DNA from: Bugula neritina
Taxonomy: Eukaryota > Animalia > Bryozoa
DNA: 64,000 bases
Assembly: GCA_964035545.1 (NCBI GenBank)
Contig: OZ037765.1
Location: 8,132,698-8,196,697, forward strand
Direction: 5' to 3'
Below, piece by piece: positions 41,601 through 48,300 of the stretch. Within the stretch, counting starts at the first letter, position 1; the number at the start of each line of letters is the position of its first letter. The notes beneath the pieces were generated by a model. It was not told the origin of the DNA, searched no databases, and was given only the letters and a program-made list of their open reading frames with translations. The translations under genes and the position numbers were made by a program.

Positions 41601-43551
41601 ATTTTGATGCCCAAGCTTACAGTTAATGTGATTATGAGTAACAAAGGTCCATAGGCCAGACGTTAATAAGAAATGCTGTTTCTCAAGCTGTCTCCACTCA
41701 ATTAACTGAGGCAACAGAGAATCTTTTATAGCTTAAGCTTTGTAGCAATTACATAATTATTTGTTCAGAGTTTACTATTTCATTTTGAATTTAGGAGGAC
41801 CTGAATTTTTTGCAAGAGGTTTCATTAGAATTCACATCTTAATCCTTCTACATCAAAGGTCAAATAAAATACTATAAGTTTTTAGTTATATAATAAAAAA
41901 CCATTTGAAATGCAAAGTTTTCTGTGACAAGAATAGCACATGATAAAATAAAAATGGTTTTGTTGCTTCACACTACTTCAGAACATTAGTTAGAGATAAT
42001 AGCTTGAAAAGAGCACATCAGCAATACTTGGAATATTATAATCATCAATTAGCCAACACTGCTGAGTTTGATATTTTGTATTAATACTTGGAACACACAT
42101 TTTTGCAATAATATAGAAATGATAAATCTAGCGCAATCAGTGTCAGCTAGTAAGAGAGCTGCACATATTGCTAAATTAGGGTAAGACTTTCACAACTGCT
42201 TCGAAAAGCTAATGATGTCGGGACTTAAAAATTTCAAGCACTTTGATACAGTGCTCTTCCCTCTGTATCTCACTAAACTTCAGGTTCCAAAACCTCAATT
42301 CGTGACATAATAGAATAGGTACCAGATTTAAGTCACAGATTCGTTAAATTTGGTCAGTTTGTCCGTATACACACTTACATAAGCCACATAATTTTGTGCA
42401 AAATTGATCCGTGAGATGTGGTGGGAGCACTTTGAATTAATCTATAGCTATATGCAGTGAGACAAAATTTTCAATTTGATGCCTTTTCAAATGCATATTA
42501 GTTTAGAAAAGCAGGTATCACAAACTGATAAACAACTGATAGTTCTAAACAAAGCTATCGGGTATATGACAGCATGTTAGGTGAAGCTTTGAAATATTAA
42601 TAGATGGTTTTAGGAATTGCACAAAGGTAATGCATAATGAAACACTTTTGAATAAGGAGACAAAAAAACAATGTTTGACATAAGCAAAATGGGCGAGAGT
42701 GTTACATATACTCTACAAGGAAATAACACAGTCCCAATTGATGTAAATTAAAACTATGTTTTTAGTAAAGATTGCCAACAGCACGTTTTACTTTTCTATT
42801 TATACTGTGTTCCATATTTAAATATTATCCAATGTGAATACAGAAGGTTAATAAAACATAAAATAATTTGCTACTTACTATTGCAGCTTCAAGTCGCACT
42901 TGAAGATAACTTTCAATTTTTTTCGCAACTTCTACTGATAAAGTTGTTCCGTTTATATAATGTGTTGTGTATGTGGCCTCTTTATATTTCTGCATAAAAT
43001 GATGCTTAAATAAATAAAATGCAGCAGGAGCAAATAAGAACACTGTCCTAAAACAATGTATCGAAGAAAGAAAAAATATGTTTTACACAGAGATTAGAAA
43101 TTTGCACTTTAATAAAAATACAATAAAATGACCTGATATTTTGTAGTTTGTCAAAAAAAAATCTGCAGAAAAATTCACATTCAAAGAGCCTGGTTAAATT
43201 GGTAATATTACAATATAGCTTAAAAATTTACTTGCAATTAGAGCATTTCTGATCTTACAATAACTATACAGATAGTCAGTGGTTACCTTTTCTATAACTT
43301 TTATTCCACTTGCATTTTTACATTGCCGGTCTATTTGTTGTCCTAATGAAGTAGCCCAAAACTCTACTCTGTAAAATATTGATTTGAGCATACAAAAAGT
43401 AAGTACAGTAATTCAGAAGAACTTTAGTTGTTGATCATTATAAATTTACTTACATGGCAGGATTGAGTTCTAAGTAAGACTGTGTAAATCCAACGATGGT
43501 GAACAGGTATACCACTGTAGTAGCAATAACCACAGACAATGTCCATTGCAT
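21199..43551 (-). CDS. CACNA2D: Voltage-gated calcium channel alpha-2/delta subunit (CACNA2D3/4- or straightjacket-like), about 1267 aa, 32 coding exons
   Basis: Exons: 43454-43551, 43287-43368, 42879-42989, 39958-40231, 39005-39133, 37630-37684, 36733-36883, 35172-35255, 34021-34110, 33418-33573, 33078-33162, 32437-32570, 31829-31897, 31002-31064, 30735-30815, 30534-30608, 29461-29565, 29147-29283, 28750-28854, 28313-28489, 27527-27637, 26424-26599, 25815-26020, 25439-25572, 24952-25033, 24696-24748, 24439-24494, 23890-24109, 23366-23545, 21968-22053, 21606-21745, 21199-21297 (3804 nt in total). Signal peptide, HVPTNIY, WQFFASSAGFLRFYP, VWA MIDAS DNSGS, MLITDG, Cache motifs GYAFIINNNGFVVSHPDL and CYLLDENGFVV, DYQAVC, VPNTNL, YRKPP, C-terminal CNGSA plus hydrophobic GPI-like tail. 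Boundaries around 23545-24109 are less certain. Confidence 0.93.
21746..21967 (-). other. U12-type (minor spliceosome) AT-AC intron of CACNA2D
   Basis: 5' site ATATCCTTT (21967-21959), branch site TTTTCCTTGAC (21766-21756), terminal AC (21747-21746). Removal restores the frame (...ILSQ-N-NCMGENE...YRKPP). Confidence 0.92.
22509..22869 (-). other. Candidate alternative last exon of CACNA2D
   Basis: Acceptor catgcag| in the phase required by exon 23366-23545; 119 further open codons ending in hydrophobic WTLIFLQICLQSIVVILLYFL*; AATAAA at 22353-22348. Confidence 0.5.
29741..29950 (+). mobile_element. tRNA-derived SINE-like element in a CACNA2D intron
   Basis: A-box-like TGTTCTAGTG, B-box GTTCGAACTCC (29795-29805), non-tRNA body, adjacent to a (TA)n/TATAGTG microsatellite (29650-29735). 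No intact cloverleaf. Confidence 0.5.
42249..42432. mobile_element. Tc1/mariner-like MITE, copy 2 (longer variant of 11131-11240)
   Basis: TA|CAGTGCTC...GGGAGCACT ends; internal similarity to the reverse complement of copy 1. Confidence 0.65.
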
Positions 43552-44526
43552 GATTCAAGCATGGTCTAATGATCTCAACAAGATAACCGTTGTCTCGCTA
43601 TCATTTTACTCCATTTGAATATTTTTGAAATCATTTGACGCTGTTAAAATTACCAGTTTTAAATTATCACTACTAGTTACTACTTTTACAAGTCTTACTA
43701 ACTACTGCATTATACAGTATATACACACTAACATATTCTTTAAACTAGTCACTGAAGCATATAGCAGCACAAAAAATCAATAATTATTATTGATTTTAGC
43801 TGACCTCAGTGCTTTATACCAGCATTAGCAATATATAGGCTAATATTTGGATTTCAAGATGTAAAAACAAAATATTTTCTTAAATAAGGAAAGAAGTCAT
43901 TTACTGAGTGTAATGAATCTGGTTACAAAGTGTAATATTGTCAAATTTGGTAACTTATGTTTTGCAGCATAGGTTCATTTGCAGTAACTTTTAGAGTGCT
44001 GATTCATACATGAATGCTTTTTTAGCATGGAAATGATCTATTATGAAAACTAAAAAATGTTTTATAGTTAATATATATTTGGATACAAAAAAACATAAAA
44101 TATCATTGATATAAAACAAAAGCTTTGCAAGATTTAATCATTTTTCAAATGGCAGTGGGTGCATCTCACCAACTTTAGATTATGATGACACTAATAGTTA
44201 CAAATCAAAGGTTTCATAACATTTAACCTTCAAATACAACATAATAACAATCCATTTCATTTTATGAGTTTGGGTTGAAATGACAATGCTGTTGGTTGAA
44301 TTGCAGCTGATTTTTTCAACAAAAAGAATAATACACAAGAAGATAACTCCCAACAGTTACAGCTTGAATTGAAACCAACAGTTTTTATATATATTAAACA
44401 GCTGAAATAAAGATTATTTTCCCTTTTCCGTTCAAATTACAGTATTCATACACCAAAGACATCAACTGAATTATCTTTACTGTTACCCCAAAGCTGAGTT
44501 TTAGAAAACCGTTTTGCCAGTTGATA

Positions 44527-45363
44527 TTAAAGATGAATAAAATCAATTTGTTTAGCAAGTTGATCCTCAAGTTCTTGGAGCTGCCCTTTTGCCACTTCAA
44601 GCTTTACAAGAGCCATATCTCTATCAGGAGTCAAGCCAGCAAACATTTTCAGTTGTTCCTCCACTGCTTTCAGGGCTTCTCTTTTTCTCACCAGCTCTTT
44701 ATAATCTGCCGTAAGCTTACTGTGTGTCAGACTGCTTGTCATGCCTGATTTAGAGGTTTGTGTCTCCAGTTTCTTACCATCTGCTCGATATTTTTGAAGT
44801 TTATTTTGATAAAACTCCACATCTCTCAAGAGAGCTGCCAGAGAGTTTTGATGCAAATTAGAGCTTTTTTCTAGATTAAGACTCATGCTTGACAATTGAT
44901 CATTTAACTTTTTTGTGTTACACAGATCATTATTATCTACACAATATTTTTTTCGAAGAAAATCCATTGCAGAGGCAGTATTCTCCTTTTCTAGCGTTAT
45001 TTGTGTCATCGCAAGAATAAAATTAGACTCATCCACAGTGTTCAATGACATAGCATTAGCAATGGAAGCTAAGTTGTTGGTCTCAACACTATTTGCAACT
45101 GGTAGCAAGTCCAACTCTTTGATTATGGTAAAATTGAGCTCTAAATCTTGGGAAAAATTCGCTTGGCATAAAGATAGAAATTGTTTAAAGCTTTGATCCT
45201 TTAGATTCATCTTGTGATCTTTTATGCTTAGTTGATACAGGTCATTAATAAAAGCATTTGATTTTGGAAATGAAGGAACAGGATCATCTCCAAAAAGTGA
45301 TATCAACCAGTTCATCACAGAACTGTATTTTTCATCATCAGAGAGCTCAACTACATCATCCAT
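44527..45363 (-). CDS. HAUS1: HAUS augmin-like complex subunit 1, single exon, 278 aa
   Basis: Intact ORF; N-terminal VMNWLISLFGDDPVPSF, coiled coil, GMTSSLTHSKL and C-terminal LTPDRDMALVKLEVAKGQL match recalled HAUS1 motifs and length. Confidence 0.9.
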   Translation of the reverse strand: MDDVVELSDDEKYSSVMNWLISLFGDDPVPSFPKSNAFINDLYQLSIKDHKMNLKDQSFKQFLSLCQANFSQDLELNFTIIKELDLLPVANSVETNNLASIANAMSLNTVDESNFILAMTQITLEKENTASAMDFLRKKYCVDNNDLCNTKKLNDQLSSMSLNLEKSSNLHQNSLAALLRDVEFYQNKLQKYRADGKKLETQTSKSGMTSSLTHSKLTADYKELVRKREALKAVEEQLKMFAGLTPDRDMALVKLEVAKGQLQELEDQLAKQIDFIHL

Positions 45364-45398
45364 GTTAACAGCCTGGCTTAAAATTGTTGTGCTAGGAG

Positions 45399-45743
45399 TT
45401 AATCTTGCTTGGTTATAGGGAAGGAAAGTTTTTCCATAAGATCATCAATTTCTGCCTGAAGTCTGGGGATTATTTCTGAAGATATAAACAGGTGGGTGTC
45501 ATCTAAATCAGCCAAAACGAATTTGCAATTAAAAGCGTTTGTCTCATCTAGGTGCAAGAGAAATTGTTTCATGGCACTATCACTACAAAAATAAAATTAT
45601 AAAGAAATTTAAAATACATTTGTTAGAGAAAATTCGAACTTCTGATGATGAACATAGATACTTTAGTTATTGAATAGTTTGCAGTAAACAGGTAGTGTAT
45701 CCCCTTACCATTTCACAAGCACTCCTTTCATTACATTTACCAT
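45399..45743 (-). CDS. GTF2H5: TFIIH subunit 5 (TTDA/p8/Tfb5), 72 aa, 2 coding exons; missed by the ORF track
   Basis: Exons 45709-45743 and 45399-45582 (GT-AG intron) encode MVNVMKGVLVKCDSAMKQFLLHLDETNAFNCKFVLADLDDTHLFISSEIIPRLQAEIDDLMEKLSFPITKQD*, closely matching recalled human [25 protein letters not shown]...DIDDTHVF. Confidence 0.95.
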
Positions 45744-47379
45744 AATTTCTAATAAAATGACACAGTCAGATTCCTTCTAAGGAGATATCTGCAAGTATAG
45801 TTGAATACTTTTCAGTACAAGAAACTTTTAAGCAAAATATATGGTATACAATTTTGAGTGATAATCATATTAATACTTAGTTGTAGTTATTCGTTTATAG
45901 ATAAATGAGAGTTGTATGGATATTGTCAGTTTTTAGCATTATTTGTATCGCATAGATTATAACTATTTTTGGTATAAAATTTAACATAAGCTAACTTTCA
46001 GACTTGGTAAGTTTACATACTTACAGAGTATAGCTTATGCAATAGATTGTATTTGCAATGGTTACTTATTAATCAAAGTAATTCAACAAACTGGCTTTGA
46101 AAAGTTCAGAAAAGTCGCTAGGAAAACTAAAAACTAGCAAAAATAAAGTGTCAAACTCCTAATCTAAAACCAAATCTACAGATTTGTGACAACAATGCTA
46201 CCATCACATCCATTAAGTTTTTCTTTGGCATTTCATTCGTTATTTATAGACTGGTTATTTTTAATCTAGTTATATTTCAATTTTGTTTCATTTTGCAATA
46301 AACTGATATTAGGGCTCATCTCTGATTTGTTGGCAAACCTTTTTATAGTTAAAATACTGGTATTGATTCTAACAAGACCTCTATTGCTTACTCTCCAAAG
46401 TTGAAAAATCAGGAAATGATCGCAATTACTTACAAGTTTATACTGATTTTCATACTCATATTGATATTAGTCCAAGAAATATAATGATTATCATGGTTAT
46501 TTAACAAGTATTACTTATATAACCATATTTATTTTAAAATAATTATTATTATGATCAAAAAATATTAAAATAATAATAATAATAACAACCAAAGAGTAGG
46601 ACAAGAATGATATAGAGTATCAGACTCACTATGACTATAACTAGGAAATCGTCAGTATGAGTATGAGTGTCAGTATCAGTCTGTATCACTATCAGTTACT
46701 ATTACTATTAGCAGTGGTATTTATATGTAACAGGTAAGTTTTCTTATGTTTCAACAGTTAAACTTAGCAGTTAGAATTACAGCTTGTGTTATTAAATTCC
46801 ATGGCATTGAATAAAACTAAATTAAAAAACCCTGACACACTTTATTAATGCAATACTAAAATGTTCATAAATATGTATATCTTAGCTAACATCTACATAT
46901 TGCTTGAGAGTTGTATGCTCAAACAATTTTGTTTTATAATATATTTTGTGCCAACATGTGTTGAATTAATTTGGGATTTCTAATAGCTTGCTGATACTAT
47001 TTCCATTAGCTGACTTTAAAGTTCAAAGTTTAAACATTTAAGCCACCTCAGAGACTAAGCTGTGTATTGCAGCAGCTAAGAATATCACATGATGAAAGTT
47101 AGCACTAATACTATAAGCTTTATAATACCTCAGCATGCGAAGCCGATTGGAAACTGTAAGGCAAGCTGATTAAAAATTCTAAATTAATTAAAGAGATGCA
47201 GAAATTTATTATAAAACAAACCTACTTGCTCATGCAACCTATAGCCTGTAGGTGAGAGCTAAGATACGTATAAATATTTTTATATTGCATAAATGAAGTG
47301 TGGAAAGATTAAGTATAACATTAGCAATTGTCTATTGGTGTAACTATAAAACTCCATTAAATAAAAAAGAATATCACAT

Positions 47380-48300
47380 GTACTATCACTAATAGTATCA
47401 CTGGTGACATAAAAAGTAAGTATAATTGTTATATGCTATAAGTGGTGATTAAGTACTGTAGAATTATTACTACTATTGCATTTACTGGTTTAGTTTTACT
47501 ATTACTATTATTATTAGTATTCATATTTATATTGTCACTATTATTATTAATTTCAACATTACTATTAGTAATACTATACAGATAATGATACTTATACTTG
47601 AACATTAAGTATTACTAAGTTAAGCTTAACTATACATAAAAGTATAACTTACAGTTATACCCAGAGCAATACTGACATTGATAGTGATAATAATAGTGGA
47701 TAGGTCATAGAACTGTAGATTTATCCTTAAAATTAATTTATTATAGCTGTATGCTTACAGTATGAGTATGAGTATCAGTATAGTGTGTACTTATACTTAT
47801 CTTATTCTTATGCTATTAGTATTAGTATTACTATTAGGTTTAGTATTACTACTAGTACTACTACTAGTATTAGTTTTACTCTTTTTCAGTATTTGAGTAT
47901 TAGCATTACTATTACTAAAAAGAAACTAATCTTATTAGACTTAGTCTTACTCTTAGCTAACGACTTAAAGTTTATTACTATTACTATTAGTATTAGCATT
48001 ATAACTTTATTATTAGCTATTACCTATTAGTGTTGCATTTACTGTAAATATTACTATAACTATAAGTATATGTATTAGTATAAGTATATGAATATCATAA
48101 TCAAATTGAGTAATTCAATATAAATGTCATTATGATTATCAATATGAATATGAAATTTAAATTGAATTTCAATTTGATTAGAATCGCAACATAAACATTA
48201 TTAAATTCAATTTTATAATCCATCCTGATTATCATATTCATTGTGATTATTATTATATTAATATTTATTATTAATATTATAATTATAATTATATTTTAAT
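47380..48300. repeat. Degenerate TAT/TAG/TAC low-complexity tract
   Basis: tattagtattactattag repeats and AT-only runs. Confidence 0.8.

Follow-up and report, generated by a model that had tools for sequence, protein, structure and literature searches.

The GTF2H5 and HAUS1 genes of the bryozoan Bugula neritina form a closely spaced, conserved pair covered by leader-bearing RNA

Introduction

In Drosophila, the gene encoding p8/TTDA, a tiny subunit of TFIIH, forms a bicistron with Swc6, an arrangement that is described as present "in all arthropods" (Herrera-Cruz et al. 2012, cited in PMC7013941). An earlier note on the DNA studied here had named this pair as p8/TTDA and p18/Swc6, correctly according to that text. 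The operons of Ciona and Oikopleura are a second point of reference. Same-strand genes of Oikopleura operons lie 23-30 nt apart, and in both animals upstream cistrons lack AATAAA, one leader is used for the first and the downstream cistrons, and dicistronic cDNAs are detectable (PMC1488885).

Here we describe a locus of Bugula neritina at which GTF2H5 (Tfb5) is followed at a short distance by HAUS1, the gene for augmin subunit 1. This unit and the arthropod p8/TTDA-Swc6/p18Hamlet unit have in common the same tiny TFIIH subunit, a transcript joining it to an unrelated gene, and conservation across a large clade. They differ in the partner gene, HAUS1 in bryozoans, and in the phylum, and because of these differences the origin of the bryozoan unit is considered independent of the arthropod one. 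A further difference is that the bryozoan transcript is leader trans-spliced; to our knowledge, insects have no leader trans-splicing.

Same-strand genes with a very short intercistronic gap, or none, are also typical of the operons of Ciona and Oikopleura and of the SL1-type operons of C. elegans. In contrast to Ciona and Oikopleura, the uncut RNA of Bugula is seemingly abundant and not rare, and the addition of a leader to its downstream gene is a proposal of the present study. Nematode operon precursors likewise differ from the Bugula RNA, since their uncut form is not abundant. The Bugula leader is about 70 nt long and derives from a gene family without an Rfam match, whereas that of Ciona has 16 nt.

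Results

The window, i.e. the whole 64-kb stretch of DNA that was analyzed, corresponds to G000:C1:8132698-8196697. Inspection of its sequence and of the list of open reading frames (ORFs) placed the GTF2H5-HAUS1 pair on the minus strand, and re-reading of this strand returned exactly the coordinates, spacer length and spacer sequence given in the earlier note. The features, in the order of transcription, are as follows:

45789..45795, minus strand: 3′ splice acceptor (CTTGCAG); site at which the leader takes the place of the outron (RNA contigs L003 and X1 record 2)
45744..45788, minus strand: 5′ UTR portion of GTF2H5 exon 1, 45 nt beyond the leader (RNA contigs)
45709..45743, minus strand: GTF2H5/Tfb5 coding exon 1, with ATG at 45743-45741; 11 codons plus 2 nt
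45583..45708, minus strand: GTF2H5 intron, 126 nt, GT..AG
45399..45582, minus strand: GTF2H5/Tfb5 coding exon 2, with stop codon TAA at 45401-45399; Pfam Tfb5
45364..45398, minus strand: intercistronic spacer, 35 nt (sequence)
44527..45363, minus strand: HAUS1 (augmin subunit 1) ORF, with ATG at 45363; 278 aa, intronless; Pfam HAUS1
44132..44526, minus strand: shared 3′ UTR (RNA contigs)

Both exons together provide GTF2H5 with 72 codons. Exon 2 alone was used for the Pfam comparison and matched Tfb5 (PF06331) with 63.2 bits (2.2e-17; gathering score 23.5). The full 72-aa protein, taken from an RNA contig (L003:74-289), shares 72-75% identity with its closest matches and up to 73% with named animal GTF2H5 proteins. 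The downstream ORF matched the HAUS1 family (PF25762) over profile positions 2-236 of 236 (149.5 bits, cut-off 40; 1.8e-43) and is 94% identical to proteins of the cluster of KAF6019848.1, which is named HAUS1 [Bugula neritina]. The high heterozygosity and AT-richness of the DNA had at first pointed to a tunicate, a reading that the name of this cluster member disproved. A genome search revealed a single copy of each gene in the B. neritina assembly.

The two ORFs occupy different frames, and a second TAA is present in the GTF2H5 frame at 45380-45378, so the locus does not encode a readthrough fusion, as had been argued from the letters alone. The 35-nt spacer sequence contains no ATG, AATAAA or ATTAAA; the absence of a poly(A) signal noted there earlier is thus borne out. 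An AATAAA motif occurs at 44805-44800, inside the HAUS1 ORF region. Both start codons are placed in a strong context, that of GTF2H5 with A at -3 and G at +4, and that of HAUS1 in all lineages compared.

Other DNA and RNA contigs show 5-6.5% divergence from the window and therefore represent a second haplotype or a sibling within the Bugula neritina species complex. Between the haplotypes, the dN/dS of HAUS1 is about 0.3, and the three changes in Tfb5 exon 2 are all synonymous (dN 0); both are therefore regarded as working genes. The spacer varies only at the two bases preceding the HAUS1 ATG. The JGI contig L006 is devoid of 243 nt (window 44594-44352), a gap that takes away the final ~23 codons of HAUS1 together with the first part of the 3′ UTR and results in a 268-aa HAUS1 variant (P0005). 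The ends of this gap are not GT..AG, so it represents either a deletion allele or an assembly artefact.

The RNA data consist of assembled contigs (Logan), in which overlapping transcripts get merged, so that a two-gene contig does not demonstrate a single transcript. Contigs L001, L002, L005 and L006 were rejected as RNA, being genomic contigs with the intron retained. Record 2 of run X1 (1495 nt) is spliced and combines exon 1, exon 2, the spacer, HAUS1 and the 3′ UTR in one contig. Record 17 of run X6 (L004, 1510 nt) is intron-free and has the same span. The 3′ UTR of both is ~390 nt long, with ends at 44181 and 44132; the cleavage site is probably located a few bases past these ends, and ATTAAA is found at 44138-44133 in the window (AATAAA in the other haplotype). 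Contig L003 (1552 nt), from a further run, is also intron-free and spans both ORFs and the 3′ UTR. The intron is missing from L003 and L004 and was confirmed by the RNA joint 45582/45709 in runs X1 and X6.

In the oligo-dT metatranscriptome X14, a contig reaches from 45133 over the spacer as far as the spliced boundary of exon 2, with a depth of 3.4 compared to 4.7 for the HAUS1 body. Altogether, four runs, which belong to three studies or more, contain continuous spliced RNA over the spacer that is compatible with polyadenylation; it takes the form of graph-assembled contigs, which cannot prove single molecules. Neither the spacer nor the AATAAA of 44805-44800 coincides with an end or a branch of any RNA contig at the locus. 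Because the spacer-crossing RNA was assembled at a depth of about 3x from a poly(A)-selected library, it is probably a main form and not an occasional precursor. At the contig level, these data support the co-transcription of GTF2H5 and HAUS1 proposed in the earlier note, and its view that one exon holds both genes is supported in that the end of GTF2H5 and the entire HAUS1 share an exon, with spliced RNA across the spacer and conservation in other lineages (see below).

The 5′ end of the GTF2H5-HAUS1 RNA is formed by spliced-leader (SL) trans-splicing. This follows from three observations: the leader is non-collinear with the locus, a genomic acceptor is placed at the boundary, and multicopy donor-bearing genes for the leader reside on another chromosome. 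The first genomic base of the mature RNA is 45788, and the acceptor CAG lies at 45789/45788. The first 22 nt of L003 are absent from the locus, and X1 record 2, which originates from a different study, carries the same last six leader bases, TAAAAG. The possibility that the 15-nt loose end of X1 is a mere indel holds only in part: the other haplotype has a 6-nt insertion, and the residual TAAAAG is leader. In second-haplotype genomic contigs the sequence reads ...CTTGCAG/ATATCTC..., and the match to the RNA starts at ATATCTC.

The leader 22-mer has no match within the 64-kb window. A genome search allowing up to two mismatches returned eight matches, distributed over C1, C4, C5 and C8 (the reversed control gave none). 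The nearest C1 copy is 5.6 Mb away, which excludes a cis exon as the source of the leader. With a leader/donor-junction probe, at least 15 related genes were identified on C8 at 11.85-12.99 Mb; the candidate SL RNA loci in this interval (G000:C8:11.85-12.99 Mb) are L011-L014, L021-L026, L028-L031 and L045-L049. A conserved CACACCGTTT box precedes these genes by ~60 nt. Their leader region of ~70 nt starts near AGAGTGTGTT, ends with GTTGCATAAAAG and is followed by a GTAAAT donor (...AAAAG/GTAAAT, at least 15 copies), past which there are ~150 conserved nt finishing with GTCATAATACAAA. The stretch directly before GTTGCATAAAAG differs among the copies.

The candidate SL RNA folds better than its shuffled versions (z = -3.4). 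It has no Rfam match at E≤1, and inspection of its conserved 3′ half by eye revealed no canonical Sm motif RAU(4-6)GR. Elsewhere in the genome, L007 (G000:C1:13823031) and L010 (G000:C5:10536279) contain the full leader with no GT donor, fused to sequence of other kinds. If both arose as retrocopies from mRNAs with a leader, as is possible, the 5′ edge of the leader would be near AGAGTGTGTT. A full-text literature search of incomplete coverage found no published report of SL trans-splicing in bryozoans.

Upstream of the leader acceptor, at 45846-46247, RNA cover in run X1 is thin (1.6-3.6x). Farther upstream, TATAAATA occurs on the minus strand at 46725-46718 and is followed by a six-base-periodic tract (CTAATAGTAATAGTAACTGATAGTGATA...); the promoter of the GTF2H5-HAUS1 unit and the beginning of its outron may lie in this segment (window 46650-46725), at a distance of ~900 nt from the leader acceptor. 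Larger six-base-periodic tracts are present at 47490-48090. Window positions 46884-47125 are a high-copy repeat, with a summed contig depth of ~12,000 in the DNA run X15, many loose ends and strand-switch joints.

The next downstream gene (43300-43717, minus strand) has its own RNA 5′ end at 43717, where an X6 contig stops against sequencing adapter, with no leader. Past 43717 this gene contains a similar AGT/ACT-periodic tract and then an 85-nt intron (43453-43369), and it gave no significant Pfam match. An exon at window positions 42825-43043 resembles an ORF located downstream of HAUS1 in L051 (E 5e-07), and the microsynteny therefore reaches beyond the GTF2H5-HAUS1 pair.

To examine conservation, HAUS1 was compared by phmmer with 50%-identity representatives. 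This distinguished a group of proteins (P0126-P0134; 31-37% identity, E from 1e-51 to 1e-29) that includes HAUS1 of Watersipora subatra and has a gastropod as the first outgroup; HAUS1 proteins of other animals stand clearly apart from it (E 3e-15 or weaker). Genomic contigs showed Tfb5 exon 2 immediately upstream of an intronless HAUS1 gene at all five bryozoan-clade loci examined. At each, Tfb5 ends with TAA and has its intron at the same codon, and HAUS1 has 272-281 aa. The spacer lengths, which together with the pairing were the comparison proposed in the earlier note, range from 35 to 152 nt:

L052: spacer of 35 nt
L055: spacer of 39 nt
L051: spacer of 59 nt
L053/L054: spacer of 81 nt
L056: spacer of 152 nt

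Chance does not account for the adjacency, which was found again in five further lineages that are divergent. To judge from these contigs, the GTF2H5-HAUS1 pairing is old within bryozoans, across the lineages sampled. The spacer of L056 (L056:329-480) contains a six-base-periodic tract of the kind present upstream of the Bugula unit and an out-of-frame ATG overlapping the HAUS1 start; in this lineage, HAUS1 may have acquired a promoter or an outron of its own.

Genomes with the most similar Tfb5 proteins (L015-L020) have an intronless Tfb5 gene and no HAUS1 within 6 kb of it. Synteny approached via these closest Tfb5 proteins is uninformative on bryozoans and was dropped from that comparison. 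The GTF2H5-HAUS1 pairing is not general among animals.

Discussion

The central question raised by the locus is how HAUS1 is produced from a gene positioned 35 nt behind another. In our reading, a promoter upstream of 45.8 kb yields a single pre-mRNA for GTF2H5 and the downstream intronless HAUS1. The outron is removed at the CAG acceptor 45789/45788, with a ~70-nt spliced leader from the C8 SL RNA cluster put in its place, the 126-nt intron is spliced out, and polyadenylation occurs near 44.13 kb. The outcome is a stable, leader-capped RNA of ~1.5 kb, carrying both ORFs and acting as the GTF2H5 mRNA. The data demonstrate these steps or point strongly to them. We further propose that a share of the pre-mRNA would instead receive the leader at an AG within the spacer, most likely at 45377/45376, to give a capped monocistronic HAUS1 mRNA. 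Under this scheme of alternative processing, most pre-mRNAs would become the bicistronic, GTF2H5-producing RNA and some the spacer-spliced HAUS1 mRNA. Such an operon-type internal leader splice, as in Ciona and Oikopleura, is the origin of HAUS1 mRNA that we favor, at about even odds.

The likeliest site for this step, predicted from sequence, is:

45377..45383, minus strand: candidate internal acceptor TTTTAAG, junction 45377/45376, 13 nt before the HAUS1 ATG

Further AGs of the Bugula spacer are at 45392/45391 and 45373/45372, and the pyrimidine tract of the spacer acceptor is weak (0.5). All spacers compared possess a pyrimidine-rich tract and an AG, 12-33 nt ahead of the HAUS1 ATG; those of 59 and 81 nt have one AG each. 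The out-of-frame ATG in the 152-nt spacer of L056 would be removed by splicing alone. Trans-splicing of an SL ahead of HAUS1 was among the routes suggested in the earlier note, and it has become much more plausible because the 5′ end of the same transcript is SL trans-spliced.

The junction expected from that route did not appear in the contigs scanned. No leader-HAUS1 junction was found in two scans of JGI contigs, a collection that may contain no Bugula RNA and whose assembly drops short branches; the query of the first scan had the wrong allele immediately before the HAUS1 ATG. A word search with the HAUS1 N-terminus for short leader-HAUS1 contigs was also negative. The missing junction, the weak Bugula acceptor and the abundance of the uncut form, with all RNA contigs crossing the spacer, are real evidence against an internal leader splice, and the lack of an evident canonical Sm site and of an Rfam match in the candidate SL RNA also speaks against it. 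Formation of a GTF2H5 3′ end at or before the spacer was not observed either: the RNA continues through, with neither a poly(A) signal nor the end of a contig. This counts as weak evidence against an SL-resolved operon, as Ciona and Oikopleura are likewise without such a signal.

There is a second, less probable reading, which we hold to be possible but doubtful: the leader-capped 1.5-kb RNA would be the only mature form, and HAUS1 would be translated from it by re-initiation after the 72-codon ORF or by other internal entry. In agreement with this, the RNA over the spacer has undergone splicing, occurs in an oligo-dT library and approaches the depth of the HAUS1 body. Moreover, HAUS1 is not preceded by a poly(A) signal for GTF2H5, five of the six spacers are free of ATG, and the context of the HAUS1 ATG is strong in all lineages. 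However, re-initiation after a 72-codon ORF, with 35 nt for reloading, should be inefficient, an out-of-frame ATG in the 152-nt spacer of L056 overlaps the HAUS1 start, and the organism has leader trans-splicing as a ready alternative. A precedent is the arthropod p8/TTDA-Swc6 mRNA (PMC7013941), for which translation of this type is assumed.

It is improbable that the locus gives rise to two overlapping separate transcripts, i.e. a GTF2H5 mRNA with a long 3′ UTR and a HAUS1 mRNA from a promoter inside or just after GTF2H5. Logan contigs would merge such RNAs, and the six-base-periodic tract in the 152-nt spacer of L056 is compatible with a separate HAUS1 promoter in that lineage. Nevertheless, in the three lineages with spacers of 35-39 nt a promoter could be accommodated only in the conserved GTF2H5 coding exon or the intron, where no contig break or 5′ end was observed, and the tight linkage has been maintained through deep divergence.

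Leaky scanning past GTF2H5 to the HAUS1 ATG, another route put forward in the earlier note, is unlikely, as the first ATG is strong and a ribosome on the mature RNA would have to pass nine ATGs, including five out-of-frame ones, before that of HAUS1. The alternative cis-splicing that the note had also considered would join the exon-1 donor at 45709 to the spacer acceptor at 45376 and give HAUS1 a 16-residue N-terminal extension from the GTF2H5 start; the frame is open in both Bugula haplotypes, but no 45709/45376 joint occurs in the contigs of any run and stop codons interrupt the extension in L051, L052, L055 and L056, so that it lacks conservation, which makes this very improbable.

As for the origin of the unit, a HAUS1 retrocopy probably inserted into the 3′ UTR of GTF2H5 in an early bryozoan and took over from the parental gene. 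We infer this because HAUS1 is intronless and single-copy, and from its position. The unit would then resemble other retrogenes residing in host 3′ UTRs, being an intronless copy of a normally multi-exon gene that borrows the promoter of its host. It would differ from the usual case in that the presumed retrocopy is apparently the sole HAUS1 of the genome and has been kept across bryozoans.

Dicistronic units and operons are known as a kind; the present case is new in its pair of genes, its phylum and its family of leaders. The earlier note knew of no report of the pairing, and our literature search also found no paper linking HAUS1 and GTF2H5 in this way. The best 120 of 379 Tfb5 matches include no NCBI-sourced Bugula or Watersipora protein, while HAUS1 of both is present in NCBI. 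Annotation pipelines that accept one CDS per mRNA may hide GTF2H5 within the HAUS1 5′ UTR in bryozoan gene sets.

In a broader reading, which we advance tentatively and with slightly less than even confidence, bryozoans would possess true operons and an undescribed SL system, with a ~70-nt leader from an SL RNA gene cluster that lacks an Rfam match. Internal leader splicing would then resolve GTF2H5-HAUS1 as an operon present throughout the clade, and GTF2H5 would have become an upstream cistron twice independently, with Swc6 in arthropods and with HAUS1 in bryozoans. The GTF2H5-HAUS1 pair offers a concrete locus for testing whether bryozoan polycistronic RNA is resolved by leader trans-splicing. 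As a second lineage of animals has GTF2H5 as the upstream member of a conserved unit of two genes, with another partner, the question "why this tiny gene?" becomes a comparative one.
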